Below are positions 1,985 through 64,000 of a stretch of DNA of 64,000 nt, in pieces. Made by a program: the position numbers and the translations under genes. The stretch is from assembly GCA_025594325.1 (NCBI GenBank), contig JANHCV010000008.1, forward strand, positions 496,001-560,000, written 5' to 3'. The notes under the pieces were generated by a model. That model did no database searches. It worked only from the letters and a program-made list of their open reading frames with translations, and had not been told where the DNA came from. The DNA is from Blastocladiella emersonii ATCC 22665 (lineage: Eukaryota; Fungi; Blastocladiomycota). The number at the start of each line of letters is the position of its first letter. The stretch's first letter is position 1.

Positions 1985-3927
1985 ATGATAGAAGCCAATG
2001 GATTCACACCGCAACTTGCTGCATCGCGGCCCGCGGGCAAGACGCATGAACTTTCTGCAACTGACAGTGTGAATGGAGACGCGACCAAAGTCCTCCTCGC
2101 GCTGCTCGGCTCGCGCATCGCCTACATCCGCCTGGGCCTCTCGCACCGACCCTGCAACGCGCCTTCTCGTCTAAGCCTGGCACACCGACACCCGGTCGCC
2201 GGTGTTGGAGAACTAAAAATCCAGCTACAGTCGGCGGCGCGGACCCCCCACGGCTTCTTCGGATCGAGGTCAACGGCCCGGTCGGGAAGACCGTTGCCGG
2301 CCGGAACACGGAACGCAAGTTTTGTCATCGAACTCATCTCGATCTGCATACACACAACTTGCTTCGCCGCACTCATCTCGATCTGCATCGCCGTCGCAAA
2401 CACGTTCTCCCTCGCGTTCTCGTACTTTGCCGCATCAACGGCCCGAATCCCGCTCTCGGTCCAGCGATTCCACCCGTCAATCGCGCGGGTCTCGGTCGCC
2501 ATCTCGTTCGCGATCACGGTCAACCAGCGTGCGATGCAGTCTGGAACCGTGAACCTGCTCGCCTGTACCCTGCCCGGCCGATAATGGTATGAACCCAACT
2601 TCGCCAGCTTCTCAAGCTACACAAGTTTCTCGAACTTCTAAATCTTCTCACTCTTCGCCAGCAGTTCAAGATTCTCAAGCTACTTCATCTTCTCCAGCCT
2701 CTCCAGCTTCGCTTTCCTCACTTGCGTCCAGCTTCTCGCACCAAATCGCCGGCGTGGACTTCGCCCGCAGGCCTAGCCCAATTCCGCGTCCTGCTCGACC
2801 AGATCATGGAGCAGGCCGGCCCAGGCACCCTTGCCCAGCTTGCTCTCCTCTGCCGTGCTGACATGCCGCAGCACGTCTTCCACGCGCTCGCCTTCGTTTT
2901 GGACACTAACACGCCCGACGCCGCCGCGCGGGACGCGATCGCCGAGACACTTGACCCGCGAGTCGCGAAATGGCTCGAGCTCACGCGCGGGGAATCCCAG
3001 TCGGCCCCGACCTTCGCGAAGCGGTTCCGCAAGTTTCTCGCTCGCGAGTCTTCCGCGGCCCCGTTCGCCACGCAGCCCGCGCTGCGGTTCGCGTTCATCG
3101 ACAAGGCCCTGGCTAGCGTTGCTGTGAGTGGGCCGGCGCGCGACCGGCTGTACCCCGGTGCACTGCGGTGGACCTCGCTCAACAAGCTCGCGGAGCTCGT
3201 GTGCTGCGCGATCCATGCGCAGCAGCAGCTCGAGAGGGAAATTGGATTGGTCGCGCCGTTCGTCGCGTCGGTGCCGGCGGGTTTGGAGGCACCGGGTCCG
3301 CTTGCTTTGACCGCGCCGAGCGCGTCCGCTGACCACAATGGCGCGAGGCCGTACAGGCAGAGAGCCAGTGCGCTCTCTCGGCTCACCGCGCCTCCAACAC
3401 CGGCTGCCCTGGTCCTTGACGAAGACATCTCCACTGCATCCTCTCCTTCGGCTGCTCTCACTGGTCGCCCACAGTTGATTGACTTAGCTGCCGATCGCAC
3501 ACGCGCTGGTTCGTCCGAGCTCGCTCCACCGAAACCCATGGAGAGCACCCCCATGCTCCCAGCGTGCACCTTCTGCCATCACCTCACCGCCCCCCCGCCC
3601 GCGCTCGCGCTCGACTCGCCGCCGCCAGCACACACGCTCGCGACATGTCCGCGGTCCCGCAACTCGCCCGCGATCGCGGCCGCTATCAGCCTCGCGCTTT
3701 GCACGGCAGGACTCTGGCCGGGTCCTTGCGTCTATACGGACGGCGAGGTCGTGGCGCGGATCCGCGTGCTGGTCGAGCAGTTTCGTGCAGGGGAGCAGGG
3801 TAGTGGGTCCACTGCCGCGGCGGCGGTTGCGGTAGGAGTCGCGAACCTCATTGCGTGCCTCGAGCTCGAGCGGGAGGACCGGTGGAGTGTTTGGTGCGCT
3901 GTGGGTCGCGCGATAAGGGATGGGTAG
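1985..3927 (+). pseudogene. RS/Gag-like family copy 1 (disrupted)
   Basis: All family domains are present but split: frameshift before ~2322, in-frame TGA at 2550-2552, and an apparent 5-nt deletion at ~2758 (GTGGACT|TCGCCC where paralogs read V-D/N-L-E-S-P). Confidence 0.8.
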
Positions 3928-4386
3928 AATGGATGGGATTGGGGGTTGTACGTGACCTGGGAGGTGATGGCTGCGGCGTGGGCTGAGGGACGCGATGGTC
4001 GTGGCCAGGTGACGCGCGCGAGCATGTTGTTGTTGCGCGTTCGATCGGCCGCGGTAGGCTTTCGCTTCACGTGCGCGTTTGATTCATGAGCATCAGTGGA
4101 GACGGAATCGTGTGGTCATCCGAGGGGAGCCGTTGCCCTGATCAAGCTCGTTGATGTACAGGTGGCAGGCGCCGCAACCGCAAAGAGCAGGTGGAGGCGA
4201 CCGAGGTCCGGCGGCGAGCACAGCTTGGTATCGTCGAGAAAGATGCACCTGCTGCTGCCCTGCATCACGCCGAGTAGCACGCCGTCAAACGGGCGGTGCG
4301 TCTCGCAACAAACGCGTCTCCCGCGCCACCGTTGGGATGAGCGTCGCGTCCTTCCGACTCTGTCCTCCCACGCCACACAAACCACC

Positions 4387-6585
4387 ATGATAGAAACGAA
4401 TGAAAATCACTTGCAACTTGCTGCATCGTGCTCTGTGACTACTGTGGGTGACGTTGTCAACGCGACGGGTGACGCATCGCACGAGCGGCCGGCTCCTTCG
4501 AGGTTTGCCCTGCTTGACTCGCGCATTCAGACCATCCGACTGGGTCTCTCGCACCGACTTGGCGTTGCTCCGACCTTGGGCAACCCGACGCAGCTACCCC
4601 CGACGCAGCTACCCCCGACGCAGCTACCCCCGACGCAGCTACCCCCGGCGAATGTAGCGATGGAGCTAGAAAGCGAGATGGCGGTGTTCCTGGCCGCGGC
4701 GCAACTTGCAGCGAACTTTGCCAACGCCGGCGCTGTGGGAACCACGCCTGTCGAGCACCATCTCTACACGGAAAATCCCTCTACTTCGGACTTTATTCAC
4801 AGCTCCCGATCAAACTCACCTTTCGAAGCCGATAATCGCTCTTGGATACCCTCGCGCTCTCGTTCTCGCTCACGCTCACGATCTCGTTCTCGGTATTGGA
4901 CTCGCCGGTCTCCCGAGTTTTGGTCGCCTTCCCGCTCGCCGTCACGCTCGCCTTCTGACATACCGTGGCGGTCCAAGTCCCGTTCAAACTCGCGTTCTCG
5001 CTCCGGTCCTTGGATGCACCAGGCGCGCGAGTATCAGTCCCGCTCTCGCTCTCGGTCACGCCCACCCTGCGAAATGAATTGGCCAGCCAGGTCCCGCTCG
5101 CGTTCGCGTTCTCGGCCCCGACTTCGCCCGTCTCCACCTCCAACGGTTCAGCCGCGGTCGCGATCTCGCTCAACCAGTGCTCGGCGCAGTGCCAGACCAG
5201 AGCCCCGCTTATCTTCTCGAGGCTCGCATGCGCTGCTCTCAAACGAGGACCCGACATCGTACACCCCGCTTACTTCGATTGTTGACGGCTTCTCGTCTCA
5301 AATCTCCGACGTGAACCTGGAGTCACCAGCTGGACTTACCCGTTTTCGCACCTTGCTTGACCACGCCCTTGAAGCAGCTGGGCCGGGCAACCTCGCGCGC
5401 GCCGCGCTCCTCTGTCGCCGCGACATGTCGCAGCGCGCGTTCCACGCGCTCGCCTTCGTCTTGGACGACGAAATGTCCGACTCGACCGCTTGGCACGCCA
5501 TCGTCGAGGCGCTCGACCCAGCGCGCCGAACCGCGCGAGTCACAGAGTGGCTCGACCTTGCTCGCAGGGCAGATGAAACGGCGCAATGCTTCATGCGTCG
5601 ATTCAACAAGTTTCTCAGCCGCGAGTCGGCCGCGGCCCGCTTTGCGACTCGGCATGCGCTACGGTTTGCTTTCGTTGACAAGGCGCTGGCCTGGAAGGTT
5701 GTCGATCGTCGCGAGCGGCTCCAGCTCTATGACCTCGCCTTTCGGCGGACCTCGCTCAACACGCTGTCCGCGGCAGTCCACGAAGTGGTCAATCGTCAAC
5801 AGTCGAATGCGAGCGCCCGCATACGCGATGTGTCGCTGTCTCCGACCCCGCTTGGACGTGGCTCGAGTGCTTCGACAGCGAACAAGCTGGCCGCCGTTAC
5901 ATCGGCCACTAAGGTCGAAGTGGCGTCGACTGGACTGGCTGAGCCTTTGCCAACCGCTTCAACCGGAATCAAACCGGTCGCTCCAACATTACTTGCTCCA
6001 ACGACGCGGGTTCCGATCAAACCAGTCAAGTCTTCCTCTTTAGCTTCATCGGAACCGGACTTGGAAAAATTGACTGCTATTGGAGCACTAAAATCAAAGG
6101 AGCCTGATCATCCTCGCACCGCTCCCGCGTCGGTCAACGATTGCACCCTCGCTGGCTCCAAGGTCACAAAACCACGTACTTATTCCGCCCCCTCGCCTCC
6201 ATCAACGACTTGGAAAAAAATTGAGTGGTCGAACCCGGCTCCAGCTCCCCCGCCCGTGTGTGCCTTTTGCAATCACCTCGGCTTCCCCGTCTTGTTGCCG
6301 CCGCACACGGTTACTTCATGCGAGCTGGCCCGCGACACGCGCCCGATCGTGGAAACGATTAGCGCCGCGATCTCTGCGGCGCAACTCGACGTCAAAATCA
6401 ACGCCGTGACGGACAGTGAGATCGTCGCGCGGATCCAGTTACTCGTCAAGCAGCTCCGCGCGAGCGACTTGCGCACAAGAGCGGCGGCCGCGGTCTCGTA
6501 CCTCGAGGCGTGCTTGGTGCTGGACTGGCCGGAGCGGGGAAAGGTGTGGTGCGAGGTGTACACGGCGGTGATGGCTTGGGAGTAG
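4387..6585 (+). CDS. RS/Gag-like family copy 2 (intact, ~732 aa)
   Basis: ACCATG at 4387 is in frame with ORF 4096..6585. Contains IRLGLSHRL, an RS tract, the core GPGNLARAALLCRR...EWLDLARRADETAQCFMRRF, CAFC-x11-H-x4-C, and the YLEACLVLD...W tail. Confidence 0.85.
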   Translation: MIETNENHLQLAASCSVTTVGDVVNATGDASHERPAPSRFALLDSRIQTIRLGLSHRLGVAPTLGNPTQLPPTQLPPTQLPPTQLPPANVAMELESEMAVFLAAAQLAANFANAGAVGTTPVEHHLYTENPSTSDFIHSSRSNSPFEADNRSWIPSRSRSRSRSRSRSRYWTRRSPEFWSPSRSPSRSPSDIPWRSKSRSNSRSRSGPWMHQAREYQSRSRSRSRPPCEMNWPARSRSRSRSRPRLRPSPPPTVQPRSRSRSTSARRSARPEPRLSSRGSHALLSNEDPTSYTPLTSIVDGFSSQISDVNLESPAGLTRFRTLLDHALEAAGPGNLARAALLCRRDMSQRAFHALAFVLDDEMSDSTAWHAIVEALDPARRTARVTEWLDLARRADETAQCFMRRFNKFLSRESAAARFATRHALRFAFVDKALAWKVVDRRERLQLYDLAFRRTSLNTLSAAVHEVVNRQQSNASARIRDVSLSPTPLGRGSSASTANKLAAVTSATKVEVASTGLAEPLPTASTGIKPVAPTLLAPTTRVPIKPVKSSSLASSEPDLEKLTAIGALKSKEPDHPRTAPASVNDCTLAGSKVTKPRTYSAPSPPSTTWKKIEWSNPAPAPPPVCAFCNHLGFPVLLPPHTVTSCELARDTRPIVETISAAISAAQLDVKINAVTDSEIVARIQLLVKQLRASDLRTRAAAAVSYLEACLVLDWPERGKVWCEVYTAVMAWE
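4585..4644 (+). repeat. 15-bp tandem repeat x4 (CCGACGCAGCTACCC) encoding PTQLP
   Basis: Four exact units read directly; absent from the close paralog copy 6. Confidence 0.95.
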
Positions 6586-6749
6586 GGTAAGACTCATCAT
6601 GTAATGGACTTTCGATGTTGGGAGTGGCGATACCCTTGGTAGCGAGGTCGCGCCGGTCATAGCGGGCTGACCAGCGTGATCACGAAACGGATGCACTCCC
6701 TGCTCAACATGATCACGAAACGGAGACCCTCCCTGCTCCACGCCGTACC

Positions 6750-8494
6750 ATGATAGAAACCGATGAAAGACGATCACCACTTGCTGCAATGAGCTCGAAA
6801 ATACCTGCTGATGATGCACCCAGCGTAAATGGAGGAAACGAGCTGACCGCAATGTTGCTCCGCCTCTGCAACGAACGCCTGCAGCAGATCCGGCTCGGTC
6901 TCTCGCACCGACTTTCCAGCGCACCGTGGCTCTCGAACCGACTTTCCAACGCACCATGGAGTGTATCTTACGGGCCAGCTAGTGCTACGATTGGCGACCT
7001 TGGGGATCTGGCTGTCGCCCCCGCGATCGCATTGGGCTGCGTGGGAACGGCGGGCGAGGACGAACCACGCTTCGCGCCTGTGACCGACCAAGCACACTTC
7101 CGCCTCGAACTTCACCTTCAATCTCGACATACCTCTCAACCGACTCAGGAAATCGTGCAAAAGCCTCGTTTGACGAATTCGAAGCAACACCAATCTCTCT
7201 CTCTCTCAGCCCGCGGCCTGGGACAGTTCCAGGTCGAGGTCTCGCACTCATTTGCACTCTCAAGCTTGCGCTCGAACTTCCTCGCGTAATCGTTCACGTT
7301 CGCGTACTCGTTCTTGGTCCCGCAGTTCTTTGTGGTCCCGGCCGGAAACTCGCTCCAGCACTCGGTCTCCTCCGCGGTCTCCAGCTCCCGAGTCGCGTCG
7401 AACTCAGTTATCACCGGCTCCTAAACCCGGTGCGTCCTCGCGGACCGGCTTCCACAACAGTGGACATTCTCGAGACCTCAGCCCAGCTGCGCCTAGTCGC
7501 CCGACCGCTTCCTTGCCTGCACCCGCGGCGCAACAGCGACAGGGCAAGGCCAAAACGTACGACCCATCGTACCAGTTCTGCGCCCAGATCCGGAAGATTT
7601 CCAGCAGATCGCGGGCGTAGACCTGGAGACCCCGACAGGTTACGTCCTCATGTGCACCCTTCTTGACGAGCTCTTCACCTGCGCCGGCCTGAGAAAGCTT
7701 GCGCACGCGGTGCTGTTTTGCCGCTTCTCGCTTTCGCGGCGCGTGTACCACGCGTTCTCAGCCGTCTTGAACAAGGACACGGCCGATGACGCCGCACGCC
7801 AAGCCGTTCTCTACGCTATCGATCCGGCGCGGCGCTCGCGCCACTTGAACGAGTGGATCGACCTGGCGCGGTTTGTGCACGAGTCGGTCGGTTCGAGCAG
7901 TGTCTTCGCCGCCTCGGGTTCACCGATTTCAACAAGCTAGATATTCCAATTCGGTTCTCATTCCTTGACAAGACTCTCACTGGCGTTCTTAACGGCGGAG
8001 CACTCAACAATCTACGGGGCGAGGTGGTGGACGGACCTATGTCGCTCGCCAGCCTCACCAACCTCGTGCACAGCCGCGTACCTGACCCTCCGGCTCCTTC
8101 TGCTGTCCAGCCCGCGCGTGCTACAACCGAAAATATCCCCATCCCCGCGTGCGCCTTCTGCCAGCGCCTTGAAGGCGTTCTTGGCAGGAGGGACGCTCCA
8201 CACTGCCTTGTGGACTGCGTGCGTTCGCGAATGTTGGACCCAATCGTGTCCGCCATTACGCGAGGGCTTCGCGTCGCGCGGATCAGACTTACTCCCGACG
8301 ATATCGACCCGCCGACAGACGACGAGCTCGAGGCGCGCGTCTCGTTTGTTCTCAAGCGACTCCGCGCTGTCAAGGAAAGTGATGGACCGCTGTCTGCCGC
8401 CATCGCGCTCCTCGAGGCGTGCCTTGTCTTGGACGGCAACGCGCTGCGGAGCGTTTGGAGCGGGGTTTGTGATGCGATGACCACCACCAGGTGA
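6750..8494 (+). pseudogene. RS/Gag-like family copy 3 (disrupted)
   Basis: Three frameshifts: near the TC run at ~7195, a 1-nt loss at ~7604 just before IAGVDLETP, and a deletion at ~7888 inside the MHR-like motif. The knuckle CAFC-x13-H-x4-C and the tail are intact. A 30-bp duplication at ~6900-6960 doubles SHRLSSAPW. Confidence 0.8.
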
Positions 8495-8746
8495 GCCAGA
8501 GAAGAGAGAGCGATAGGCTAGAATACCTTTTTGCCGCGCGCTTTTGTGGGGGATGCGTTGATCTGTTAGAGGCCAGGTTGAGTTAGAGGGCGCGTGAGCC
8601 ATATTTTTTAATAGACGTTCGATGGAGCGATGCGGAGCCGCGGTGGTGTGGGATGGGAGACAAGCCGCCGCGCTCAAGGTGGCGCAGCGGACTTGTGATC
8701 CTCGCCGGATGGCACACACTCGCCTCTCCCCGCCCACCCTCGCACC

Positions 8747-10609
8747 ATGCATGAAACGAATGAAAGACTCCCGCAACTTGATGCAACCCTTTCGGCGGAC
8801 CCAGAAATGCAGGCGACAGCCTCCGGCGAGCGGCGAGGCGAGGCTGCCCTCCGAGTCCAACTCTGCGATGCACGCTTGCGCCATATCACGCTGGGCCTCT
8901 CGCATCGGCTCTCTGGAGCCCCTTGGATGGGCTCCGCAGCTTTCTGGACCTCGGCTGCTCCGATCCATCCTCTTGAACAACGCATCAGCTTGCTGGGAGC
9001 TGTAACCTGTGCGGAAGCGGGCGAACCAGCAAGCTCCAATGCTCAAGCTTCTGCACCCCTAGAGTCTCCAGACGTGCTCGCCGCGGTGCAAACGCATTCG
9101 GGTGCTCCATCAACGCCACCTATGCAAACGCGAACGCCTTCTCGCTCGTCCTCGCGGTCTCGTTCACTTTCACGTTCCCGTTCTCGCTCACGTTCAAAGT
9201 CTCGCTCTCGCTCTCGCTCACGTTCGAAGACTCGCTCTTGCACTCGCTCACATTCCCGTTCTCGCTCACGTCGCCGCTTTCACTCTCGCTCTCGCTCGCG
9301 CCCGCGCAGTAAGCGTCATTCGACTCGGCACCGCTCTCGTCGATTTCGCTCGCGCTCCTCCTCGCGCTCATCGCGGGATCCTGGACCCAGGTCGCGCTCG
9401 CGTCGGCGCACCCGCCGCGACTCTCTATCGCATTCGCAGTCGAGATCACGCTCCCGCTCTGCCGGTTCGCGTCCCGGGTCTCGTTCGCAAACTCGCTCAA
9501 CTTCGCTGCCCCAACGGAGCAACGCATACGAGTCCGGCTCATCGTATCGAACTACGGTTCGTCACAAAAGCGCTCGACGGAGGCTCCGCTGCTTTGTTCG
9601 CAACGTTGCACACTATATCCGGCAGGTGGACCTCGAAACTCCTGATGGATTGCTCAAACTGCGCGACTTTTTTGACGAGCATATCTTGGCTCGAGTTGGG
9701 CCGGGCACGCTCGCGTCCGCCGCACTGCACTGCCGCCGATGCCTGCTTCCGCACGTGTATGCTGCGCTCGCCTTGGTCTTGGAGGAGAACATGGCTGATG
9801 AGGCGGCGTGGGAGGCCATCACTACCGTGCTTGATCCTGCACGCCGTCCCGAGCGGGTCACCGACTGGATCGCTCTCGTGCGGGCTCAATGCGAGTCAGT
9901 TGACGAGTTCACTGGACGCGTGAAACGGTTTCTTGAGCGTAACGCCTTGGATAAACTCTTCGACACGCGGCCCGCTCTTCGACTAGCGTTTCTGGATAAG
10001 GCGACGACGCTTGATATTGGAACCAAGGCGCTAGAACTGCTCCAAGACCGCGCACAAACGCCCGTCACGCTTGGCAAGTTGGCCACTTTTATCAAACACG
10101 CTGAGAGGCGGCCCCTTGGGCGTAACGAGCGCACGGTTGTCGAGGCCCCACCTGTGCGCCTTGCTCCGTTGGTACAAGCGCAAAATCATACTTTGCCGAT
10201 TCCGCACTCGGTGCCGCCTGCTGCAGCGCAGCAGCCACCAACACCACTGTCGACTTTGTCCTGTGCGTTCTGTCGGCGCCTCGTCGTCCCACTTGGCCGG
10301 CGTGCTCCGCAACACCGCCTCGCAGACTGCAATCGAGTCCGTTTCACGCCTCCACTCACTGCCGCGGTCGACCACGCGATACGGGTGACGCGGCTGAACA
10401 TCACTCAAGCTGACCTGGACGCGGCGACGGACGAGGAGCTCACCGCTCGCATCACCTCGCTCGCCGATCGCCTTCGCGCGTTACAAGAGACCAACGACGC
10501 GGTCCCGCCTGGGGTTGGGTACCTGGACGCATGCCTTGTGCTTGATGCCCAGGAAAAGCGGAGGATCTGGAGCGCGGTCTGCGAGACCATTCAGACCAGG
10601 AAGCTGTAA
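8747..10609 (+). CDS. RS/Gag-like family copy 4 (intact, 620 aa)
   Basis: Uninterrupted ORF with all five family modules and a long RS tract. Confidence 0.85.
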   Translation: MHETNERLPQLDATLSADPEMQATASGERRGEAALRVQLCDARLRHITLGLSHRLSGAPWMGSAAFWTSAAPIHPLEQRISLLGAVTCAEAGEPASSNAQASAPLESPDVLAAVQTHSGAPSTPPMQTRTPSRSSSRSRSLSRSRSRSRSKSRSRSRSRSKTRSCTRSHSRSRSRRRFHSRSRSRPRSKRHSTRHRSRRFRSRSSSRSSRDPGPRSRSRRRTRRDSLSHSQSRSRSRSAGSRPGSRSQTRSTSLPQRSNAYESGSSYRTTVRHKSARRRLRCFVRNVAHYIRQVDLETPDGLLKLRDFFDEHILARVGPGTLASAALHCRRCLLPHVYAALALVLEENMADEAAWEAITTVLDPARRPERVTDWIALVRAQCESVDEFTGRVKRFLERNALDKLFDTRPALRLAFLDKATTLDIGTKALELLQDRAQTPVTLGKLATFIKHAERRPLGRNERTVVEAPPVRLAPLVQAQNHTLPIPHSVPPAAAQQPPTPLSTLSCAFCRRLVVPLGRRAPQHRLADCNRVRFTPPLTAAVDHAIRVTRLNITQADLDAATDEELTARITSLADRLRALQETNDAVPPGVGYLDACLVLDAQEKRRIWSAVCETIQTRKL

Positions 10610-11004
10610 TAATATATTGAGTTTTTTTGTCGATACCGAGCTTGAACGAAAACATGCCGAGCCGTTGCTCGATCGCGAAGATAACTGGGACTTAAAGCTT
10701 ATTAGGAAGTAGCGGGCAGGTTCGAGCGGCTGCAAGGACCTGGATCCAGTGTTGATATGCGCCAACAACTACGTGAACAGCCTCAGTGCACTCAAGGTAG
10801 CGCTACTCGTAGTACGTGTTGGGTATTGACCGGCCACGGATGAGATCGAGTCCGAAGAATACGCGACGCGTTGGCTATGCGCAGGTGATCGCCAGCTGCC
10901 CGACAGGCGTGACGTGCCCAGCTTGGTGTGGCGCACAGCTCAACCGCTTCCGCGCTCCCTCCGCCACACATGAATCGAATGGATAACTGCCGTAACTTAA
11001 TGCA

Positions 11005-12954
11005 ATGAGCTCCCCGCCGCCCTCGGAACCGTGTCCAGGACCATGCGAGCAGTCGTCCATCTTGGTCCGCCTGTGCGACCAGCGCATCAAGCTCATTCGG
11101 TCGGCTCTCTCGCACCGATTGTCTGATACGCCTTGGATTGGAACCGCGGCGTACAAAAACTCGACTCTTGCGATATCTGAGCTTGAGCAGGAGCTCTGTG
11201 CGGCTCAAGCAGCTGCGCAGGTTCCACTAGCAACCGACGACTTGGTAAGCGGAGATGAAGTTGCGCGTCATCCAGACCCTTTCCAGTCCTCGTCATCCGC
11301 ATCACTTTGCTCGCGTCGCTCGCCATCCCCGCGGAATTCTCGGTCGGCGTCAACATCCGTTACTCGTGGCCGCTCCCGCTCCCGCTCTCGCTCTCTATCG
11401 CGCTCTGCTGAGAGAGACCGCGATCGGCCATACTCGCGCTCCCGTTCACGCACCACAAAGCGAGGCCGGTCTCGATTGCGGTCTCGTTCGCGGTCGCACT
11501 CGCGCTCTGGAGGGCGATGAAAGACGCCGCATCGCTCTCCATCGCAATCACGCTCCAGCGCAGTGCGACGCAGCGCGAGATTGCGCACTTGCTCGCCGTC
11601 CCGCAGCTCGTACTCGCCCGCGCGACTCGCTGCTCCCAAGGAGCCCATGCCGTACAAAAAACTTCGACACATTGTTCGAGACAACACCAAATATCTTCGC
11701 GGAAAGAATTTAGAAACGCCCTCGGAGCTAAAATGGCTGCGCAGCTTTCTCAATCGGATACTGCGAGACGTTGGTTCTGGCAACCTTGCCAACGTCGCGC
11801 TCCTGTGCCGCCAGTGTCTAGAGCCGCAAGTGTACCACGCTCTGGCACTGGTCCTTGACCCAGATATGTCCGACGACGACGCTTGGGAGGCCATTGCTGA
11901 AGCGCTTGATCCGTCCCGCCGTCCCGCACGAGTCGCCGAGTGGCTTAACTTGTCTCGCGGCAGAGACGAGTCAGTCGCCGATTTTGCCCATCGCTTCAAG
12001 TTGTGCCTTGCCCGTGTCGGGTCCGCGCACTTTTATCGAACCCGGCTTGCAGTGCGGTTCACGTTCCTCGAAAAGGCTCTCGTTCATCCTGTTTCCAAGG
12101 AGACTTTGGATCGGCTCAACAACAGCACATCAAAACTTACTTCGCTGACTCCGCTGGTCGCCCAACTCCAACACCTCGAGACCAAACAGGTTACGCGCGG
12201 CCGTGATGCTCTCGCCAATGGTAAAGCGACTCCGGCTCGCGCGACAGCGATCCCGAGCGCATCGGCCGCTTCAGCTTCGCGGGCAGTCAAGAACGGACCG
12301 TCTCCAATCGTTGCAGCCAACTTGGGTTCACCTCCTCTTGACGCCCCGACTTCAGCTATCAACTCTGCGGCACCGCTTTCACTCGTTCCTGTGGTAGCAG
12401 CTGCAGATACACCCAAGCCTTCTACCAAGCCCATTCCAATCGTATGGGTGGACCCAGCTCCAACAGTCTTCAAGGACGAGGACCTGAGGCGTACTCTCCC
12501 GTCGCGCCCATCTCTCCGTTCGCGCTCACCGCCGCGCAACTCGCTTCCCGCACCGCTGGACCCGCCCGAGACCCCCAAGTCCTTCTCAGTCGCTTCCTTG
12601 ACAGACTCGGGTTGCGTGTTCTGCGAGTGTCTTGTCTTCCACGTTGATCGACGTGGCCCGCCACATATTCTCTCAAAGTGCAGGCGGGCGCGTAACACGG
12701 CCGCAGTTGTGTCGGCTATCAACCATGGCATCCGGGTCGCACGGCTTCGCCTCGTTCGTGCCGATCTCGATGCAGCGAACAACGGCGAGGTTGTGGCACG
12801 AATCCAGGCTCTCATTCAACGGCTCGAGGCGGTCGAGCAGACCAACAACGCGTTGCCGCCGGCCATAGGGTACCTCAAGGGATGCCTTGTGCTGGATCCT
12901 GAGGCGCGGAGTGGGCTCTGGCGCAAGATTAGTATGATGGCAAAGGTTGGGTAG
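11005..12954 (+). pseudogene. RS/Gag-like family copy 5 (single in-frame TGA)
   Basis: ORFs 11005..11520 and 11563..12954 are in the same frame, separated only by TGA at 11518-11520 (likely CGA>TGA in the RS tract). A downstream ATG (MPYKKLR) could still give a core-only protein. Confidence 0.7.
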
Positions 12955-53800: not shown

Positions 53801-54205
53801 CATTTGATAGCCCCAGAACATGGCTGCAGGTCGATCGAGGTGCTCGGAGAACCAGAGCTGTCCAATGTGGCGGTCTAGAGTGGCGGGATCCAGCTTCGAA
53901 TGTGCGAGTACGTGTAAAATGAGGAGAGAACGAGCAATCTGCTCCGGGCGCAGGGCGTTGAGCGTGAAGGACATGGCGGCGCGCGAGCCCTTGCGCTTTG
54001 CCTCAGCGAGCGTGTGCGCGACCGAGCGCAAGTCATGGAATCCGCATAGCAGCGCGCTCAGCTTGCGCTCGGGGATGCTGGCATCGTGATAGAGAAAGAC
54101 GTCGGCGGCGCAAGAGTCGCGGAACGGGTCGAAGTGGTCAGCCGGGTCGGCGAGTAGGACCGACGCGCTCGTCTGCGTTGGGACGAATTCAGGCGCTGAT
54201 CCCAT
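50860..54205 (-). CDS. DUF4470-domain gene B (intact, two exons, ~1095 aa)
   Basis: Exons 54205-52681 and 52622-50860. Intron 52623-52680 (GTTCGC..TACTAAC..TTAG) is at the same position as in gene A, and the spliced frame is open (FAQG|GSF). Confidence 0.8.
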
Positions 54206-54550: not shown

Positions 54551-56318
54551 ATGGAAGAAAAGAATGAATTATACGCTGTATCACTTGCTCCGGGCAGCTT
54601 GATGAGATTCCCAGGCCGGTTGACGACATGTGCGACGAGTCGGCATTGCTCGTCCGCGCGTGCGAATCGCACTTGAAGCGCATTGCACTCGGTCTTTCTG
54701 CTCGACTGCACAGTCTTCCCATGCGATGGGACTCGACACTAGAACTCCCAAACCGAGTTTTTGCGCGTCAGACCGCGGCGCTCAATCGCTCTCGAACCCC
54801 AAATCGGTCCTCGTCTGTCTCCCGATCCAGGTCTACGTCTCGATCGCGTTCTCGCAGCTCAAGTCGATCTTGTTCACGTTCTCGCAGCTCAAGTCGATCC
54901 CGTTTACGTTCGCGAGCGCACACACGATCCAGTTCTCCGCCTGCCCGCTCCGACTCCGCCTCACCTTATCGAGGCCGCTCTCGCCCCAGATTTCATTTTT
55001 CATACGGCTGGAGATGCAGGTCTCGCTCTCACTCATGGTCTCGTTCGCGTTCACGCTCTCGCTCTCGCTCGTGGCCCAGGAAAGCGCCACGGAGGTGCTC
55101 GCCGCGTCCACCTGCCGCTTCCGGTCGGCGACGCAAACGAGGTGGACGCAAACGAGGCCCACGGAAACAGCAGACACGCGCATACGGCAACAAAGCACGT
55201 ATGCCCTCCCCGCCTCGAACCGCTCCGGCAAGCTCGCTCACTGACGGGTCTTCTTCCACGGGCCCAGTTTCACTTGAGCAGTTGCGTGACATTATCCAAA
55301 GATTCTCACACTTGATCGAGGTGTTGGACTTGGAAACCGCGGCGGGCGTCGAGCAATTTCGGTGCATCATTGACTCCGTTCTCCAGGCAGCGGGGCCGGG
55401 CAACCTCGCGCGGGCTGCTTTCGCTTGCCGCGCGCACATGCAGCGTCGCCTATATCACGCACTTGCCATCGTCCTTCACGACGAAATGCCTGACGAGGTC
55501 GCGTGGGACGCCATTTCCGAGGCACTCGACCCCGCACGCCGCTCCGCAAAAATCAAGCAGTGGATTGGGCTCGCTCGGCGCAAAGACGAGTCGGTGGAAT
55601 ATTTCGCGCGCCGCTTTGAGTGCTGCCTAAACGACGTTTCTTCTTCGAATGGCTGTGCAACTCGGCTTCCGTTGCGCGTCACCTTCATCGAGAAAGCGCT
55701 TGCCGATATGAATGTTCCCGATCAATCACTGGACTGCCTTCGCGACCTCGCGTCGAGGCGAGCCTTGCTCAAGGACCTGGTTTTGCTTGTCCAGGTCACC
55801 GAAGTCGAACATTCGAAGTTCGCCCGCCGCCGTCGCCGTCCAGTCACTTCACTCGACCCTGCTCCTAAGGTGCCGCGTCCTCCGATGCCTTCTTTAAACG
55901 CGCCTCAACCCCTCTTTCGCCGCGTCCAATCCGCCCCACAGCTGCTACTAGAGCAACCCGTGCCTCACGCCGACAAGTCACATTGCCCATTCTGCGCCCG
56001 GCTCGCAGGCGGCCGCGACGCTGCCTTGGTCGTACATGATATTTCCGAGTGTGTCCATGCGCAAAACACGAACGCAATCGTGCTTGCCATACAAACTACG
56101 GTCTCCGCGACGCGCAGATTAGCTGCCCACCCGATGATGCACGTCCGTCTCGAGTCGACGAGCTGATAGTGCGGGTCAATATGTTGACGGACCGCCTCAG
56201 AACTTTGGCACGCGGCAGGCTTCTCGTCGTGCGCGCAGTCAAGTACCTCGAGGCGTCGCTTACGCTCGAACCCCAAGCGCTCCTGGCGATCTGGAACGCA
56301 ATTTGTAGGCCGCGGTGA
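54551..56318 (+). pseudogene. RS/Gag-like family copy 11 (frameshifts in leader and tail)
   Basis: Leader ATG 54551 is out of frame with ORF 54628..56166. A second frameshift at ~56090 puts the tail in ORF 56049..56318. The core and knuckle are intact. Confidence 0.75.
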
Positions 56319-56522
56319 TTAACTGCAATAAGTAAACAACAGATCTTTGCGAATGTCACGGAGCACTATGCGAGCGGAAGGCGGGCGATGTGAGAGCGAG
56401 GGTAACGGGAAGCGCGTTGCGCCACATCTGCGCTTGGCAGGTCCGTCGCGTGACTGTGGCGCCTCAAGCCCGCCTCCAAGGAGCGCTCGAGACAGCAGCT
56501 CTCCCCATGAAACACTCAAACC

Positions 56523-58061
56523 ATGAATAAAACGAATGAATTGCGCTCACCACTTGCTGCATTAAGCCCGGCGGTCCCAAACGAGTGTCCGGCCACTTCT
56601 AGCGACCCCAGCGGCCAGTCGGCCTTTCTGCTGGACTTGTGCAACGCGCGCCTGGCACACGTTCGACTGGGCCTTTCCCACAAGCTCGGAGCGGAGACGT
56701 GGTTTGGTTCAAGGGCATGGAGCACTTCTGCTGCTCCGGTTGTTGATTTGGAGCGGCGGCCTCAAACGCTCGAGGCCACGGCGCAGTTCTCTGAATCGAC
56801 TCTATCCGGAGCAAGCGACAACATCAACGGAACACCATTTTCATCTTCGCTTTGCGCGTTTGAAACGGTCTTGATCTCGGGCGAAACCCGTACGGGTCGT
56901 CTAAACCGCGCGGATTCACTGTCACGCTCCCGCTCGCGCTCGCATTCGCGGTCTCGCTCTGTGTCACAACAACACCCGAGTGTGATGTACAAGCGGATCT
57001 CGAGCGGCGTTTCGTCCAGACAGCGCACATTCCTCAGCGGAATTGTCAAGCGCTCGGCCGATTGTATAGCAAACGTGGATTTGGAGACGATGGTTGGCTT
57101 GCAGCGACTGCGCGTCTTTCTTGACAATATTTCAGTGCGCGCCGGTCCAGGAAACATTGCTTGCGCCGCCCTCCTCTGCCGTCGCGTCATGGCGCCGCGC
57201 GTTAACCATGCTCTCGCCTTGGTCCTCGAAGACGAAATGTCTGACGACACCGCTTGGAAAGCAATTACAGAGACACTCGACCCTGCTCAACGCACCGAAC
57301 GATTCACCGAGTGGCTCGACCTCGCGCGCGGTCGCGGCGAGTCGATACAAGAGTTTAAGCGCCGCTTCGCCTCGTGTCTCGAACGCGTCGCGCCCTTGCG
57401 ATACTTTTCCGATCGGCTTGCGGTCCGTCTTGCGTTTGTTGACAAAGCCATCGTTGGCACCTTGAGCGAGGATGTGCTCAACCGATTACGCGCCAAGGCA
57501 CTGTCGCGGATGTCGTTGGGCGAGTTTGCTGAGCTTGTCCAGCATGCCGAGACCGAAGAGAATCGGTACCAGCAACAACACGGGCGGGTGGTTCGCAATG
57601 CGCTGGCGACTTGTCCACCTTCCCCTGCTCCATCGGCACCAGCTTCAGTGTTACCACCAGTTTTAGCGTTACCACCAGCACGGCAGCAATTCCAGGACCA
57701 TGACCCAGTGTGTGCCTTTTGTCGCCACATTACTCCATTCGTAGCGAAGCGACTCGCTCCACACGAGCTCTCTGAATGCAAACGGGTCCGAGACACGCGG
57801 CCAATCGTTGCGGCCGTCAACCAGGGGCTCCGAGTTGCCCGAATCCGGTTCACGTCAGCCGATGCCAATCCCGCTTCAGATCGGGACCTCGAGGCCCGCG
57901 TGCGGTCGCTGCTCGAGCGGTTTCGCGCCATCGAGCATGACAATTCCGCGTATCCGCCGGCCGCCAAGTACCTCGACGCGTGCCTCGAGCTCAATCGCGG
58001 CGAGCTGCGGAAGATCTGGAGTCTGATATGTGATTCGGTCAATCCTAAGAAAAGGAGCTAG
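56523..58061 (+). CDS. RS/Gag-like family copy 12 (intact, 512 aa)
   Basis: Uninterrupted ORF with a short RS tract, the core EWLDLARGRGESIQEFKRRF, and CAFC-x13-H-x4-C. Confidence 0.85.
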   Translation: MNKTNELRSPLAALSPAVPNECPATSSDPSGQSAFLLDLCNARLAHVRLGLSHKLGAETWFGSRAWSTSAAPVVDLERRPQTLEATAQFSESTLSGASDNINGTPFSSSLCAFETVLISGETRTGRLNRADSLSRSRSRSHSRSRSVSQQHPSVMYKRISSGVSSRQRTFLSGIVKRSADCIANVDLETMVGLQRLRVFLDNISVRAGPGNIACAALLCRRVMAPRVNHALALVLEDEMSDDTAWKAITETLDPAQRTERFTEWLDLARGRGESIQEFKRRFASCLERVAPLRYFSDRLAVRLAFVDKAIVGTLSEDVLNRLRAKALSRMSLGEFAELVQHAETEENRYQQQHGRVVRNALATCPPSPAPSAPASVLPPVLALPPARQQFQDHDPVCAFCRHITPFVAKRLAPHELSECKRVRDTRPIVAAVNQGLRVARIRFTSADANPASDRDLEARVRSLLERFRAIEHDNSAYPPAAKYLDACLELNRGELRKIWSLICDSVNPKKRS

Positions 58062-58119: not shown

Positions 58120-58571
58120 CCGCATGCTGAGCGGATCGCAGAAGGCAGACGCGTAACCTCGCGCGCATCGCGCTTGCGGCTCGCGAGTACATGCTCCCTC
58201 GCGTCTACCATGTGCTTGCCCTTGTCATACACGAAGAGATGTCCGACCGCGCCGCGTGGGATATCGTTGCCCAAGTACTCAACCCGTCGCGCCGCAACGC
58301 CAATATCACAGAGTGGATCCAGCTGGTCCATCAGTCGGGCGAGTCAGTCGAGGATTTCGCATACCGATTTTCGCTGTGCCTACACCGCATGGCTTCCTTA
58401 CAACACTTTGCGACCCGGCTCCCGCTGCGCATCGCGTTCGTCGAAAAGGCGCTCGCCGGTAGCGCTCGTGTCTGGGCGCTCGCCCAGCTCCAAATACGTG
58501 AAGGGAAGTGTGCCTCCCTCGTTGATGTGACCGCGCTTGTTCAAGAGGCCGATTCTGAGGACCGGAGGTAG
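58120..58571 (+). pseudogene. RS/Gag-like family copy 13: capsid-like core only
   Basis: ORF 58191..58571 (MLPRVYHVLALVIHEEMSDRAAW..EWIQLVHQSGESVEDFAYRF..LRIAFVEKAL) has no N-terminal helix, RS tract, knuckle or tail. Confidence 0.75.
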
Positions 58572-58920: not shown

Positions 58921-60494
58921 ATGAACGACTCGCATGAAAATCTATCGCCACTTGCTGCATTGTGTTTCGTGAAGCAGATGGATCACTTTGACGCGTCATC
59001 GAAGCAAACGGCCGCACCGCTGCAATCCTGCTTGAGCAGTGTAACGCGCGACTCCGACACATCGCGCAGGGCATCTCGCACCGCCTGTCTGGATCGACAA
59101 CTATAGCTTTTTCAGCGCACTTGTCTGCTGTCGGTCCCACTTGCGATTCGAGAAACCCGTCGGTGCTGACTGAGTGGGATTGGATTGCAGCCGGACCAGC
59201 GTTTTGGGCCCGCTCCCGCTCACATTCTCGTTCCCGCGCACCGTCTCGGGATCGCGATCGCCCTGGTTCCCGCAAGCGTTCTCGATCGCCGCGACGGTGC
59301 AATGAAAGATCGCGCTCGCGTTCTCGTGCGCAATACGGATCTCGATCTCGGTCTCGCTCGCGCTCCCAATCGCGTCCTCGTACCGTGCCCCGAAACCACT
59401 CTCCATCACATAACAAAGGGCGCAATCGTGATCGTGACCGCCAGTGCGCAAAAAGTGACAAGACAGCGTTCCAGAAGCTCAAAGTCGTTGTGCTCAACGC
59501 CGCCCAGTCCATTGCGGGCGTAGACGTGGAGACACCGGAGGGACAGGCGAAGATGAGTAATTTTTTGAACCTACTTTCGAGCCGAGTTGGACAAGGAAAG
59601 CTTGCACGCGCCCTTCTCATTTGCCGACGTTCGCTACAGCCGCGCGTTTTTCATGCATTCGCCCTGGTCATCGACATCGAAATGACGGATCAGGCGACGC
59701 GAAAGGTCGTTTTCGAAGTGCTCCACCCCGCGCGCCGATCCCAAGGGTTGTCAGAGTGGATGGATCTTGCTCGGCGCGACGGCGAATCGGTTCGAGAATT
59801 CAGCAAACGCTTCGAACAGGTGCTCGACCGCATCGCTTCAACCAAACTAATTCCCGAACGGCTTGCCATGCGACTCGCGTTCATAGAAAAGGCTCTCACT
59901 GGCTTCGCGAATGAGGCGACAATTATGCAGGCCCGTAACGCTGCTGCGGTCCATCTTCCACTCAGCGTCCTCGCTCGCGTGGTTGAGCAGGCCGAACGCA
60001 TGCCGGAGCAACAAAAGCCGCACGAGACAATTATGTTTCGGTCGTCCACCTCTAAGATGATTGTGCATTCTCGACCACACTCGCGTGGTCCTGCTCCGCA
60101 GCGCCTTTCCGCCCCGGAGCAGCGGGCATCTCGACGTGAACCCAGCCCTCTCGACTCGCAATGTGCCTTTTGCAGCTGCCTCGCGCCATTCCATTACAAG
60201 GCCACGAACCCGCACAAGTTTTCAGACTGCGGACGAGCGCGTGACTCCCATACCACGGTTCAGGACATCAACCACGGGCTCCGCGTCGCACGGATAAAGC
60301 TCGGCTGTGGGGACCGGCGCCTCGTTGACACAAACGAGGTTGCGGGCCGCGTTCGGTCGCTCATTGGTGAGCTTCGAGCTCTCGTACAGCCGCATCAAGC
60401 GTCACTGCTCGCGATTGGCTATCTCGAGGCGATCCTGGTTCTCAATCCCGAGAAGCTGCAGCGGATTTGGATGTTGGTTTGTAACTCGTTTTAA
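58921..60494 (+). pseudogene. RS/Gag-like family copy 14 (one early frameshift)
   Basis: The leader frame breaks at ~59015. The rest (LLEQCNARLRHIAQGISHRL through to the stop at 60494) is a single open frame. Confidence 0.7.
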
Positions 60495-60652: not shown

Positions 60653-62571
60653 ATGAACTCATCTAATGAAGAAGCTTGCTCAGCACTCGGTGCAATGACT
60701 TTGTCCATGTCATCCGATCCACCACCGGGGCTCGCAGTTGACGAGCGCAACATGACGGGATCGCTTGCGCGCCTGTGCGACGCGCGCATTCAGCACATCA
60801 CACAAGGCCTCTCCCACCGCCTGTCACACTCGCCTTGGCTTGAAACCTCAGCATTTGATCGCTCATCAGACCATTTACGCGAGCTCGAAGGCCGGGTTGC
60901 AGTTCTCGAGGTGTCGCTGCCATCTTCGCCGTTTCCTCGCGAGCCGTCCATCTCGGCTTCGCACCGTGCCCCAAGATTTCCTCATACTTCGCTTCCTCAT
61001 GATTTATTGGCGTTCCGCTAGCGCTCACGCTCACGCTCGAAATCGCGCGCGCCCCTTGTCGCCACTTTCAGTTCTGGTTTGCAGTCACCGTCGCGGACTC
61101 TTCAAGGCGAATCCTTAACACCATCCTTATCCCCGCCGCGGGAGGAGTTTGACTCCGAGTCGCAGTCTCAATCGCAGTCAATTTCTCGTTCCGATTCGGA
61201 ACTCCAGCTTCGCTTATCACCGCACGGCCAGCGGATTCCCCAGCCGGTTTCCACCCGACCCAACCGTACTGCTGGTCCTATCCCGCGCGGCAGGCTGCGC
61301 TCTCTTGTCCGCTCGTCCTGCAACATGATCAAAGATACTAACATGGAGGCACCGGCGGGACTGGCCGATTTCCGCGAGTTTCTCGAAGACTTCCTCAAAA
61401 GATCCGGCCCTGGTCATCTCGCATACGCAGCTCTTATATGTGCCGCCCCAGCCTTCAGCCGCACATCTTCCACGCACTGGCCCTCGTATTGGACGACGAA
61501 ATGCCCGACGCGGCGGCATGGGAGGCCATCGTCGAGGTACTCAGCCCGTAGAGTCGTCCGCACCACGTTTTCGAGTGGATCCGTCTCGTGCGCCGCCACG
61601 GCGAACCGCTTGGCCAGTTTGCGGCCCGATTCGAGCAGTTTCTCAACTGTTTTTCGTCCGCCAGCCGAATTACCACCCAATTTTCCTTGCGCCTGACTTT
61701 CCTTGAAAAGGCATTTCCACAAACACTTGACAGACGGATGTGGAATTATCTTTGCGAACTTGTACGAAGAGATGCACCTCTTCGCGATCTAGTTCGTAGG
61801 AACGAGCAAGTTGAGGCCGACTTTCAGAGCGAGCGGGGCCGTACTCTGCCTGTTCAACCTCATCGTTCAAAACAGCGGCTCAACTGCTGCACGGCAGCAA
61901 CAAACGAGACCAGCCTACTTCAACCGAGACTCAACAGCCTCATTCGCGTGCTGCAGTTCAGCTGCTTCCTCCTACACCGCAATCGACCCGGCGCGTACCC
62001 CCTCGGTATTGCCAGCTCGAGCGTCTACATCAAGCTCAGCTACGCGTGATACAGTGTTTTCTTTCGCAGCTCAAGCTTGTTCCTCCTTCCTTATTTGAGA
62101 GCAAAAGTCTTCGACTACCCGCCCGTGGAAGGCTCAGCGCTAAGCTCAGCTCAAGTCGCCCCAGGCGACGCACCAGCTCGATCGCAAGCACGCCCCCAGC
62201 CCATCAAGCACAAAAGGCCCGAAGCCCATGACCCAATATGCGCGCTTTGCCGGTTCCTCGTACCATTCGATCACAAGGTCATGGTGCCGCACCATCTCAA
62301 AGACTGCAAGCGGGTGCGTGACCCTGGCCCAGCGATCCTGGCCATCAATCACGGTCTTCGCGTCGCGCGTATTCGGCTCTACCACGCCGATGGGATGCTC
62401 GCTGCCGGAAACAGACTTGAGGCCCGTATTCGCTTCCTTTTGGGCGACCTTCGAACGAAGAAACACATCCACGAGTCGATTTCGCTCGCCGTTGCGTTCT
62501 TCGAAGCGATCCTAATCCTCGACCCCAAGGTCATTGAGCGGATCTGGCGGAGGCTCTGTGACATGGTCTAA
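60653..62571 (+). pseudogene. RS/Gag-like family copy 15 (multiply disrupted)
   Basis: TAG at 61019-61021, frameshift at ~61442, a second TAG at ~61549, and a further frameshift before ORF 62077..62571. Confidence 0.8.
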
Positions 62572-62848
62572 CGTGTCGAGGACGAGAATCGCCACTTGTG
62601 CTGTGTCTAAGGAATAAAGGCATCGTTTGTGATGATTCAAGGACCTTCGCTACACGCACGGACGTCAGAACTTTAATGGATAGCAGGAAGCCTACAAAGG
62701 TACAGCGAGATCCGACTCGAGCCGCGAAAATCGACGCGCTCGCGATGTGTGGCTGCGCCACACACGTGCATAGAAGTGGTGTCGTTGGAGGGCAGGCGTG
62801 GCGAACCTATCGGCCGTCAATCCGACCTCGCTTCCCCGTCGAGATTCA

Positions 62849-64000
62849 ATGAATAGCTCCCATGTAAATCAACCTCCACTTGCTGCATATTGCTCGCCGA
62901 CGGTCATGGATCAGCCAGACGTGCCCGCTTTGATCTCTAGCCAAACTACCGCGCTCCTCCTCCAACTGTGCAACGCGCAGAATGAGCACATCCTCCAAGG
63001 TCTCGGCCACCGTGTTTCCGGCGCACCGTTTCTGGAGACACCGGGTTATCTCCAATCGGTCGCAATCGGTCGCCCCTATCCAAGCGCTTGCGCATGACCT
63101 CGAAGGGCTGGAGCGAGAGCAAGCCCGACTTGCTGTAAGCTCGCACTTGGCACCCGCACACTCGCCGTCCCGAGGCAGGTCTTTGACCTTGTTCCCTTCT
63201 ACTATGCATAAACGGGCCAAAGAGAGTCCTCGATCGCGCAGCCCACCCCGCTCACTGTGCAAGTCACGCGCCCCTTCGCGTTCGCGCTCGCACTCGCACT
63301 CTCGTGAACGCAGTAAACGCACATATTTATCCCGATCTCGTTCCCGTTCGCGCTCTTATTCTCGCTCGCGCTCTCGCTCTCGCTCTCGCTCTTGTAAACG
63401 CAACAAGCGCAGATCGTTACAGCGGCCACGCTCTCGTTCTCGTTCTCGTTCTCGTTCTCGTTCTCGTACTTACTCAAACTCGCGGCTTAGGCCACGATCA
63501 TTGAGCCGCTCGCCGACTCGTGCGACTCGAGCTGCACTACACTTGAGCACAGTAACGCCGGGTTTACACCGTTTGCAACCCTCAAACTTGGAACCCCCAT
63601 CGGCTATCAAGCCGCAAGCTGCACCGGACCGTCCTGGTCACGTCGAACCAAAGTGCGCCTTCTGCCAGCGCATCGTCCCTTTTGAGCGCCTACGCTTTGC
63701 GCCACACGTGTTTTCCAGGCGCCCTCGAGTGCGCGATCCGGTGAAAGCGGCAGAAGTCATCCACCTAGCTGCCCGTGTTGCGCGCCTTCGGTTGACTAAG
63801 GACGACATCGTCCCCTCCGCCAACTTGATTGAGGGCCCGTTTGGTCCAAAATCGCGTCAGAACGCCACGTCAGAACAGAACCGTGAGAATGACCTCATTC
63901 CGCTCCAGCCCGTTCTGCTCATAACCGTGACCCAAACGTCATCGCCTCATTTCATTCTCACACTCGCTGAGAACGCTCGCTGCGACCCGACGAAAGCGCG
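62849..64000 (+). pseudogene. RS/Gag-like family copy 16 lacking the capsid-like core (runs off window)
   Basis: N-terminal helix, then a frameshift at ~63070. My translation then gives an RS tract followed directly by EPKCAFCQRIVPFERLRFAPHVFSRR with no core, and the frame stays open to 64000. Confidence 0.7.

Follow-up and report, generated by a model that had tools for sequence, protein, structure and literature searches.

The stretch of DNA analysed here, referred to as the window, comprises 64,000 nucleotides of Blastocladiella emersonii ATCC 22665 (positions 496,001-560,000 of contig JANHCV010000008.1, which is 1.80 Mb long). It contains 16 paralogous genes whose products combine an all-helical, capsid-like core with a putative zinc-binding motif and, often, a tract rich in arginine-serine (RS) dipeptides. 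Copies were detected by scanning the six-frame translation with a profile hidden Markov model (HMM) and by tblastn. All are on the plus strand in a 9 + 1 + 6 arrangement: nine copies span 1985-21905, a single one occupies 44601-45931, and the other six extend from 54628 as far as the window end. Gene and spacer together form a unit of 2.0-2.6 kb, in which the spacer accounts for 150-400 bp, and pairwise identity among the copies is 30-62%. Both methods bear out a preliminary description of this DNA, which reported about 16 plus-strand, intronless, head-to-tail paralogs in the same 9 + 1 + 6 order and assigned them to a flagellated microbial eukaryote; B. emersonii is a zoosporic fungus.

Copies in the window

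Five of the 16 copies are uninterrupted open reading frames (ORFs) of 512-764 amino acids, with starts at 4387, 8747, 13270, 19980 and 56523, the same five that had been listed as intact. The remaining 11 are broken by nonsense codons, frameshifts or deletions. Sequencing errors are an unlikely source of these frame breaks because the assembly was generated from PacBio HiFi reads with Illumina polishing (PMC9730499). Programmed read-through or recoding of the in-frame stops was considered and rejected, since TGA, TAA and TAG codons are mixed and occur at non-homologous sites, some of them in the conserved core. Introns were rejected as the cause of the breaks on the same grounds, and the intact relatives are single ORFs. 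Three further copies, two of them intact, are located past the window end. The copies, together with one isolated remnant, are as follows:

1985 to 3927, plus strand: c01, disrupted; N-terminal part out of frame with the core, TGA at 2590
4387 to 6585, plus strand: c02, intact 732-aa ORF with a long Pro/Ser-rich linker upstream of the zinc motif
6750 to 8494, plus strand: c03, disrupted by several frameshifts and stops (TAA 7287, TAG 7938)
8747 to 10609, plus strand: c04, intact 620-aa ORF
10970 to 12954, plus strand: c05, disrupted; N-terminal frameshift and in-frame TGA 11518 within the RS tract
13270 to 15564, plus strand: c06, intact 764-aa ORF, sister to c02
15717 to 17389, plus strand: c07, disrupted; frameshift past the N-terminal part and TAG 16703 in the conserved core
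17657 to 19633, plus strand: c08, disrupted by a single in-frame TGA (18341) directly 5' of the core, sister to c05
19980 to 21905, plus strand: c09, intact 641-aa ORF with the longest RS run, a (GCTCAC)n array at 20611-20776
39930 to 39999, plus strand: isolated start-region remnant that reads METNRHLLHF, with no family sequence downstream
44601 to 45931, plus strand: c10, solitary; zinc motif and tail separated by a frameshift
54628 to 56318, plus strand: c11, short N-terminus; zinc motif and tail separated by a frameshift
56523 to 58061, plus strand: c12, intact 512-aa ORF, the reference copy
58131 to 58568, plus strand: c13, fragment containing part of the core only
58921 to 60494, plus strand: c14, N-terminal peptide out of frame; a 500-codon frame (58992-60491) contains helix, RS tract, core, zinc motif and tail
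60653 to 62571, plus strand: c15, disrupted by frameshifts and three stops (61019, 61549, 62047)
62849 to 64000 and beyond the window end, plus strand: c16, RS tract fused to the zinc motif, core deleted, remainder degenerate

Domain layout and zinc motif

Members of the family are built from a conserved N-terminal peptide and helix, a disordered tract that is often RS-rich, an all-helical core, a Pro-rich linker, a zinc motif and a four-helix tail. The preliminary description had attributed a shared domain order to all copies; this is true of the full-length copies (alignment A1), but c13 is restricted to the core and c16 has lost it. In A1 the N-terminal peptide reads M-x-E-T-N-E and the helix R-L-x-H-I-R-L-G-L-S-H-R-L. 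The RS tract is highly variable in length (17-80 RS/SR dipeptides) and the linker spans 30-230 residues, while the structured core measures ~185 amino acids rather than the ~150 first proposed. In c12 the N-terminal peptide and helix occupy residues 1-79, the RS tract approximately residues 128-150, the core residues 171-355 (57033-57587), the linker residues 356-396 and the tail residues 420-512. The ~90-residue tail is confidently helical in the structure model, with predicted local distance difference test (pLDDT) values of ~76-95, and has no recognised relative. Copies at distant positions of the contig that read as whole ORFs contain an N-terminal peptide M..E-T-x-C-N, the helix, often an RS tract, the core, the zinc motif and the tail; as several of them lack the RS tract, this element is dispensable in the family.

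Linker and tail are separated by the following motif, predicted from sequence:

57711 to 57779, plus strand: predicted zinc-binding motif of c12, C397-x2-C400-x13-H414-x4-C419

Thirteen window copies have the spacing C-x2-C-x11-13-H-x4-C, and C-x-[FYLW]-C-x10-14-H-x4-C describes 41 copies family-wide. The four ligands and one Asp residue are invariant throughout the broad family alignment (A4), in which members are only 15-44% identical. The two halves of the motif, C-x2-C and H-x4-C, are as in the Gag knuckle, but the loop between them is 10-14 residues long instead of four, and Pfam zf-CCHC does not match it. The term Cys-Cys-His-Cys (CCHC) knuckle in the preliminary description, which implies the canonical C-x2-C-x4-H-x4-C, therefore applies only loosely.

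The start region is conserved in DNA far above the rest of the gene, from ~30 nt upstream to 45 nt downstream of the start codon (for example 4361-4425, 8721-8785 and 56497-56561). In order, it comprises a CT-rich stretch (CTCCC..C), ACCATGA..GAAACGAATGAAA and ACTTGCTGCA, and invariant bases occur at synonymous positions. It could serve as a regulatory or RNA element or have arisen by 5' gene conversion.

Similarity of the core to capsid domains

The AlphaFold2 model of the core, based on a 31-sequence alignment, is very confident (pLDDT 95.6, predicted template modelling (pTM) score 0.89) and contains 11 helices, ordered as six helices, a loop and then four or five helices. In a Foldseek search of the PDB with this model approximately 23 of the top 50 matches are retroviral capsid proteins (CA) from five genera, with alpha-, gamma-, delta- and lentiviruses represented, none with an E-value below 0.7. 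The C-terminal domain of murine leukaemia virus (MLV) CA matches the core with a probability of 0.80, a template modelling (TM) score of 0.55 and a root-mean-square deviation (rmsd) of 3.7 Å over 78 columns. A similar enrichment is observed in BFVD, where about 24 of the top 50 matches are retroviral Gag or caulimovirid coat proteins, with probabilities up to 0.82 and query-normalised TM scores up to 0.50. The full-length core has TM scores of 0.28-0.50 against capsids. A model of core plus tail gave the same weak CA enrichment with lower Foldseek scores, and the corresponding profile returned only noise from PDB sequences.

At the sequence level, the best PDB match of the family profile in HMMER is PNMA2 (8uyo, E 0.039), residues 239-290 of which align to the most conserved stretch of the family, containing the motif G-E-x-V-x2-[FY]-x2-R-[FL]. 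Capsids of retroviruses and Ty3-type elements possess a major homology region (MHR), E-x4-aromatic-x2-R-[FL], located in a turn that leads into the first helix of the C-terminal lobe. The family motif shows the same spacing of Glu, aromatic residue and R-[FL] and occupies the same position; in the core model it sits in a loop that precedes a helix. In the reference copy it is located as follows:

57312 to 57389, plus strand: MHR-like motif of c12, WLDLARGRGESIQEFKRRFASCLERV, aligned to PNMA2

The consensus is W-L-x-L-x-[RP]-x-P-G-E-[ST]-V-x2-F-x2-R-F-x3-L; of 31 copies, 21 have the E, 28 the F and 22 the R. The family has not retained the Q-G pair found in the retroviral MHR. Pfam searches gave further leads. 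PNMA matches one annotated relative, P0003 (P-numbers designate the GenBank relatives of the family), with E 9e-5 and 22.4 bits against a cut-off of 25 bits. Retrotrans_gag reaches E ~0.03 in three members and Gag_p24_C E 0.07 in two.

Several results weigh against capsid homology. No Pfam Gag family reaches its gathering score, and no Foldseek match in either library has an E-value below 0.07. Full-length superpositions deviate by 7-17 Å, and the structures of Ty3, Arc and PNMA are not among the top 50 PDB fold matches. P0003 is apparently an annotation chimera of three adjacent copies, so that its PNMA E-value is the sum of three weak matches; single cores match Retrotrans_gag, PNMA and Gag_p24_C at no better than E 0.03-0.07. 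Gag matches were absent for 13 further cores, PNMA2 was lost from the PDB sequence matches when a distant subfamily supplied the profile, and the zinc-motif loop is longer than that of Gag knuckles. The capsid-like core of the preliminary description thus retains the fold enrichment, the MHR-like motif and the weak Gag matches in Pfam, each of them below threshold. The modelling and profile searches that it had suggested yielded a confident helical model with CA-enriched matches, but no significant Gag profile or fold match. Taking these observations together, we consider it likely, though unproven, that the core is a true capsid homologue.

Family size and duplication history

Seven loci of 20-25 kb (L001 to L007) were sampled around annotated relatives at contig positions from 186 kb to 1.30 Mb, and each contains several further copies, most of them unannotated. 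At least 57 copies of the core domain are present in the 213 kb formed by these loci and the window, a number from which no copy density should be extrapolated, because the sampled loci are centred on family matches. Among 1.84 billion representative proteins only eight matched the family profile; all are from B. emersonii and all are encoded on JANHCV010000008.1. The locus of the best profile match overlaps the window (5,691 bp at 100% identity), and this overlap ruled out a kinetoplastid origin, an idea prompted by the intronless head-to-tail arrays. A metagenome scan with alignment A2 found no relatives, word-indexed protein searches with the full protein, the core region and A4 added nothing new, and PHROGs profiles returned noise only. 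An exact look-up of the window ORFs gave no match, even for the conserved SAXO gene. The preliminary description knew of no family with this architecture, and we likewise found none: Pfam gave nothing above threshold, the GenBank relatives are all labelled 'hypothetical protein', and literature on Blastocladiella combined with capsids or endogenous elements contained nothing relevant.

The GenBank models of the family that we examined are apparently truncated or chimeric. P0004, P0007 and P0008 start at internal methionines. In P0001 apparently spurious introns excise the RS tract from a region that reads as a single 723-codon ORF. P0006, like P0003, appears to join several adjacent copies. 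Unreliable models are found at L001 10001-12172, L002 10001-10942, L005 10001-13458 and L006 10001-15141. Because most copies are in addition unannotated, the family is invisible to proteome-based screens.

In a maximum-likelihood tree all window copies form one clade (support 100/96), to which two of the downstream copies are sister, and the other loci form local clades of their own. A duplication of the block c02-c05 inside the window gave rise to c06-c08, with repeat spacings of 8.9 and 6.7 kb. Neither long terminal repeats (LTRs) nor inverted repeats flank copies in the window, where the long repeats are the genes themselves. No protease, reverse transcriptase, RNase H or integrase domain of Pfam is present in any sizeable ORF there, in agreement with the earlier statement that pol is lacking. 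The local clades, the duplicated block and the lack of LTRs, inverted repeats and pol domains indicate that the family has expanded through unequal crossing-over and segmental duplication rather than transposition. Near-identical cores are found at L002 10001 (~958 kb) and L004 17315 (~868 kb), about 90 kb apart, with terminal branches of 0.075; recent dispersed duplication or gene conversion therefore also occurs in the family.

Selection and age

Ratios of non-synonymous to synonymous divergence (dN/dS) in the core are 0.27-0.41, with synonymous divergence (dS) of 0.7-2.5. The closest pairs are c05/c08 (dN/dS 0.27, dS 0.96) and c02/c06 (dN/dS 0.36, dS 0.73), while dS is saturated (1-2.5) for most other pairs. 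A ratio near 1 combined with a lack of expression would, according to the preliminary description, have spoken against its interpretation; the values observed correspond to purifying selection. Taken with the invariant zinc ligands, they imply, at the level of sequence, that the copies are old and have been protein-coding through most of their history. Such ratios denote protein-level constraint over most of the divergence and do not by themselves identify the beneficiary. The pseudogenes with a single lesion appear to be recent losses, a pattern of birth and death.

Genomic context

The capsid-like genes have a GC content at third codon positions (GC3) of 0.60-0.65, and neighbouring orphan families 0.59-0.77. 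Conserved genes in the window have much higher values: 0.96 in a SAXO gene (642-1844) and 0.85-0.88 in an ankyrin gene. Judged from sequence composition, the low GC3 would be in keeping with weak or specialised expression, or with a mutational and recombinational regime of its own; because the paralogs are old, it is not on its own proof of foreign origin. The ankyrin-repeat ORF (24577 to ~25450) and a low-complexity ORF of 1141 codons and ~75% GC (24968-28393) overlap in different frames. The two may represent one gene with an intron or frameshift, and 24577-28393 is the most GC-rich part of the window.

Other orphan families are duplicated beside the capsid-like genes, with similar divergence. 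The duplicated orphan, leucine-rich repeat (LRR) and DUF4470 regions are:

21956 to 24356 and 46121 to 48664: duplicated pair of regions
41088 to 44396 and 50860 to 54205: duplicated pair of regions
28703 to 30607 and 49532 to 50455: duplicated pair of regions

Proteins of the Y1/Y2 pair are 44-45% identical, with the second Y1 copy disrupted. Family X is encoded on the minus strand, shows 43% identity and has left a remnant at 40540-40867 (minus strand). The DUF4470 proteins share 56% identity, with DNA stretches at 82-86%, and the LRR proteins ~28%. Co-distribution of these orphan families with the Gag-like family was rejected, as X, Y1, Y2 and DUF4470 are found in the window and not at the distant loci. 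Between 31000 and 41000 there is no convincing ORF and no Pfam match. GC skew is +0.08 to +0.13 in this interval and negative where plus-strand genes lie, which points to minus-strand genes that have escaped recognition and may contain introns. Searches of the window for Rfam families and tRNAs gave no matches.

At the distant loci, a weak match to an integrase core (rve, E 1.4e-4, below cut-off) is located at L003 850-2016 on the minus strand. It adjoins an intronless gene for a 996-aa protein with a Herpes_ori_bp-type helicase domain (L003 3927-6917, plus strand, E 3.5e-16). This pair, at contig positions ~187-193 kb, lies some 300 kb away from the window and could belong to a DNA transposon or a virus-like element. 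Weak PIF1-helicase fragments, possible Helitron-type remnants, are annotated near family copies at the ends of L002 and L005. Chitin synthase genes adjoin capsid-like copies at two of the seven loci (L003 11157-17526, minus strand; L007 20744 onward, plus strand), an adjacency that may be coincidental.

Origin and possible function

On balance, we lean towards the view that these genes constitute a Blastocladiella-restricted multigene family that lacks pol, probably derives from gag and evolves by tandem birth and death under moderate constraint. Their GC3, far below that of conserved neighbours, and the high proportion of pseudogenes (11 of 16) count against it. These two features (GC3 of 0.60-0.65 versus 0.85-0.96), together with representation of a single species in databases, leave the family's earlier designation as domesticated and host co-opted unsupported. 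Of the marks of domestication, purifying selection is evident from the core dN/dS and the five intact copies, and syntenic orthologs in other species were found neither among the 1.84 billion representative proteins nor in the metagenome scan.

A two-lobed helical core with an MHR-like strand-turn-helix would be expected to confer capsid-like self-association, the zinc motif and the basic, phosphorylatable RS tract could bind nucleic acid, and the N-terminal helix and coiled segment might provide additional oligomerisation or targeting. From this combination of self-association, nucleic-acid binding and N-terminal oligomerisation we propose that the products may form RNA-protein assemblies, either particles or condensates. 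The zoospore is known for its stored ribonucleoprotein. The family may perform a service for the host, such as zoospore RNA packaging or dominant-negative interference with retroelements, or may be a self-perpetuating relic. A more ambitious interpretation, which we regard as distinctly unlikely, is that a gag gene has turned into a very large chromosome-restricted family, spread over more than 1 Mb, whose copies number in the tens and perhaps in the hundreds. Its self-assembling, RS-bearing capsid-like proteins would package or sequester RNA, in the zoospore or as a diversifying defence against retroelements and viruses.

It is also conceivable, if somewhat unlikely, that this is a lineage-specific, all-helical zinc-binding family unrelated to Gag, whose likeness to capsids reflects a generic helical bundle and a chance motif. 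Every fold and profile match is below significance, 13 cores have no Gag match, the zinc-motif spacing is unlike that of Gag, and PCI-domain, NASP and designed helical proteins occur among the same weak Foldseek matches. However, capsids of reverse-transcribing viruses from many genera dominate those matches in two independent libraries. The sole sequence-level leads are three Gag-derived Pfam families and PNMA2, all at one motif, and the succession of helical N-terminus, CA-like core and Cys-His motif is the Gag order.

Kinship with Gag would also be compatible with decay. The copies could be gag remnants of a retroelement, possibly once trans-mobilised by an autonomous partner, and now debris in a repeat-rich compartment, which would accommodate the broken copies, the GC3 that is low relative to conserved neighbours, a density of annotated genes below the genome average in this region (PMC9730499), and the weak integrase-like ORF and PIF1 fragments elsewhere in it. 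We judge this very unlikely, given that no LTRs, target-site duplications or pol were found in the window and that the head-to-tail order, short spacers and co-duplicated blocks are the pattern of unequal crossing-over and not of transposition. Furthermore, the copies are old (dS 0.7-2.5) yet constrained (dN/dS 0.27-0.41), with zinc ligands invariant family-wide and a start-codon region conserved in DNA. Nor does a multigene family of a large endogenous viral or giant mobile element, occupying ~1 Mb of the contig, appear anything other than highly improbable. GC content is uniform (~60-62%) at all sampled loci compared with 70-75% in conserved genes, many orphan multigene families are accompanied by LRR and ankyrin genes, and the 996-aa helicase lies beside the integrase-like ORF in L003. 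Against this, viral hallmark genes were not seen in the 213 kb, SAXO and chitin synthase genes show that ordinary cellular genes are intermixed, the metagenome contig scan revealed no relatives, and the very old paralogs fit long residence in the genome.

Comparison with known systems

Host genes derived from gag, such as Arc, PNMA, PEG10 and Fv1, are well studied in animals, and in fungi they are to our knowledge known only as a few low-copy cases. If the kinship of the Blastocladiella family with capsids is true, there is no described precedent for a pol-less family of such size, for the restriction of such a family to a single chromosome region in an early-diverging fungus, or for the addition of an RS tract and an expanded-loop zinc motif. 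The culturable fungus, with its synchronous life cycle, would then offer a tractable system in which to ask why capsid genes are kept and amplified. Should the interpretation as gag exaptation be correct, fungi would have their first case of capsid exaptation on a large scale, and the Gag layout would be a new one. What is new here is the domain layout and the scale of amplification, pol-less genes derived from gag being already known, and the standing of the family is tempered by sub-threshold homology and the high pseudogene fraction.

Co-opted gag genes kept in fungi without pol include Crtg12-14, which originated from the gag of Ty1/Copia and Bel-Pao elements (Wang and Han 2021, PMC8321522). 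In contrast to the Blastocladiella genes these are low-copy and shared above the family level, and none is reported from Blastocladiomycota (PMC8321522). A 2024 co-option screen of the fungal kingdom did not include Blastocladiomycota (PMC10799480).

The best sequence-level match is to PNMA (Pfam PF14893; PNMA2 capsid structures 8uyo and 8rb3), a domesticated Ty3-type Gag, with a Pfam E-value of 9e-5 and a PDB profile E-value of 0.039, the match being below the Pfam gathering score. Both families share the MHR-type motif and consist of pol-less, multi-copy paralogs, and some PNMA members have a Cys/His motif past the capsid domain. PNMA is found in vertebrates with orthologs across species, whereas the Blastocladiella family is seen in one fungus. 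PNMA lacks the RS tract, the expanded zinc loop and the C-terminal four-helix tail; its copies are not arranged in tandem arrays of megabase scale, nor are most of them pseudogenes. Arc and dArc1, domesticated Ty3 Gags that form RNA-carrying capsids, resemble the family in their N-terminal helical or coiled segment, disordered linker, bilobar helical capsid domain and lack of pol, and dArc1 and dArc2 are tandem duplicates. Unlike the Blastocladiella proteins, Arc has neither zinc motif nor RS tract and is present as one or two conserved copies.

The main neighbours of the core in fold searches, all with non-significant E-values, are the CA proteins of Rous sarcoma virus, MLV, bovine leukaemia virus, human T-lymphotropic virus, human immunodeficiency virus and feline immunodeficiency virus, and caulimovirid coat proteins. 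The helix count fits that of retroviral CA (six, then four after the MHR-like turn), and the C-terminal lobe superimposes on that of MLV CA (TM 0.55, 3.7 Å). The orientation of the lobes differs (rmsd 7-17 Å full-length), the Q-G pair is not conserved and no protease, reverse transcriptase or integrase is found in the window. As in SR proteins, the long alternating Arg-Ser runs are expected kinase substrates that could mediate RNA and protein contacts; the family has such tracts, and no RNA-recognition motif or other SR-protein Pfam domain was found in it. The gag-derived restriction factors Fv1 and Ty1 p22 offer a pure analogy, being pol-less proteins that co-assemble with incoming or nascent capsids, and by this analogy fast, conflict-like evolution would fit the birth-and-death pattern of the Blastocladiella family.

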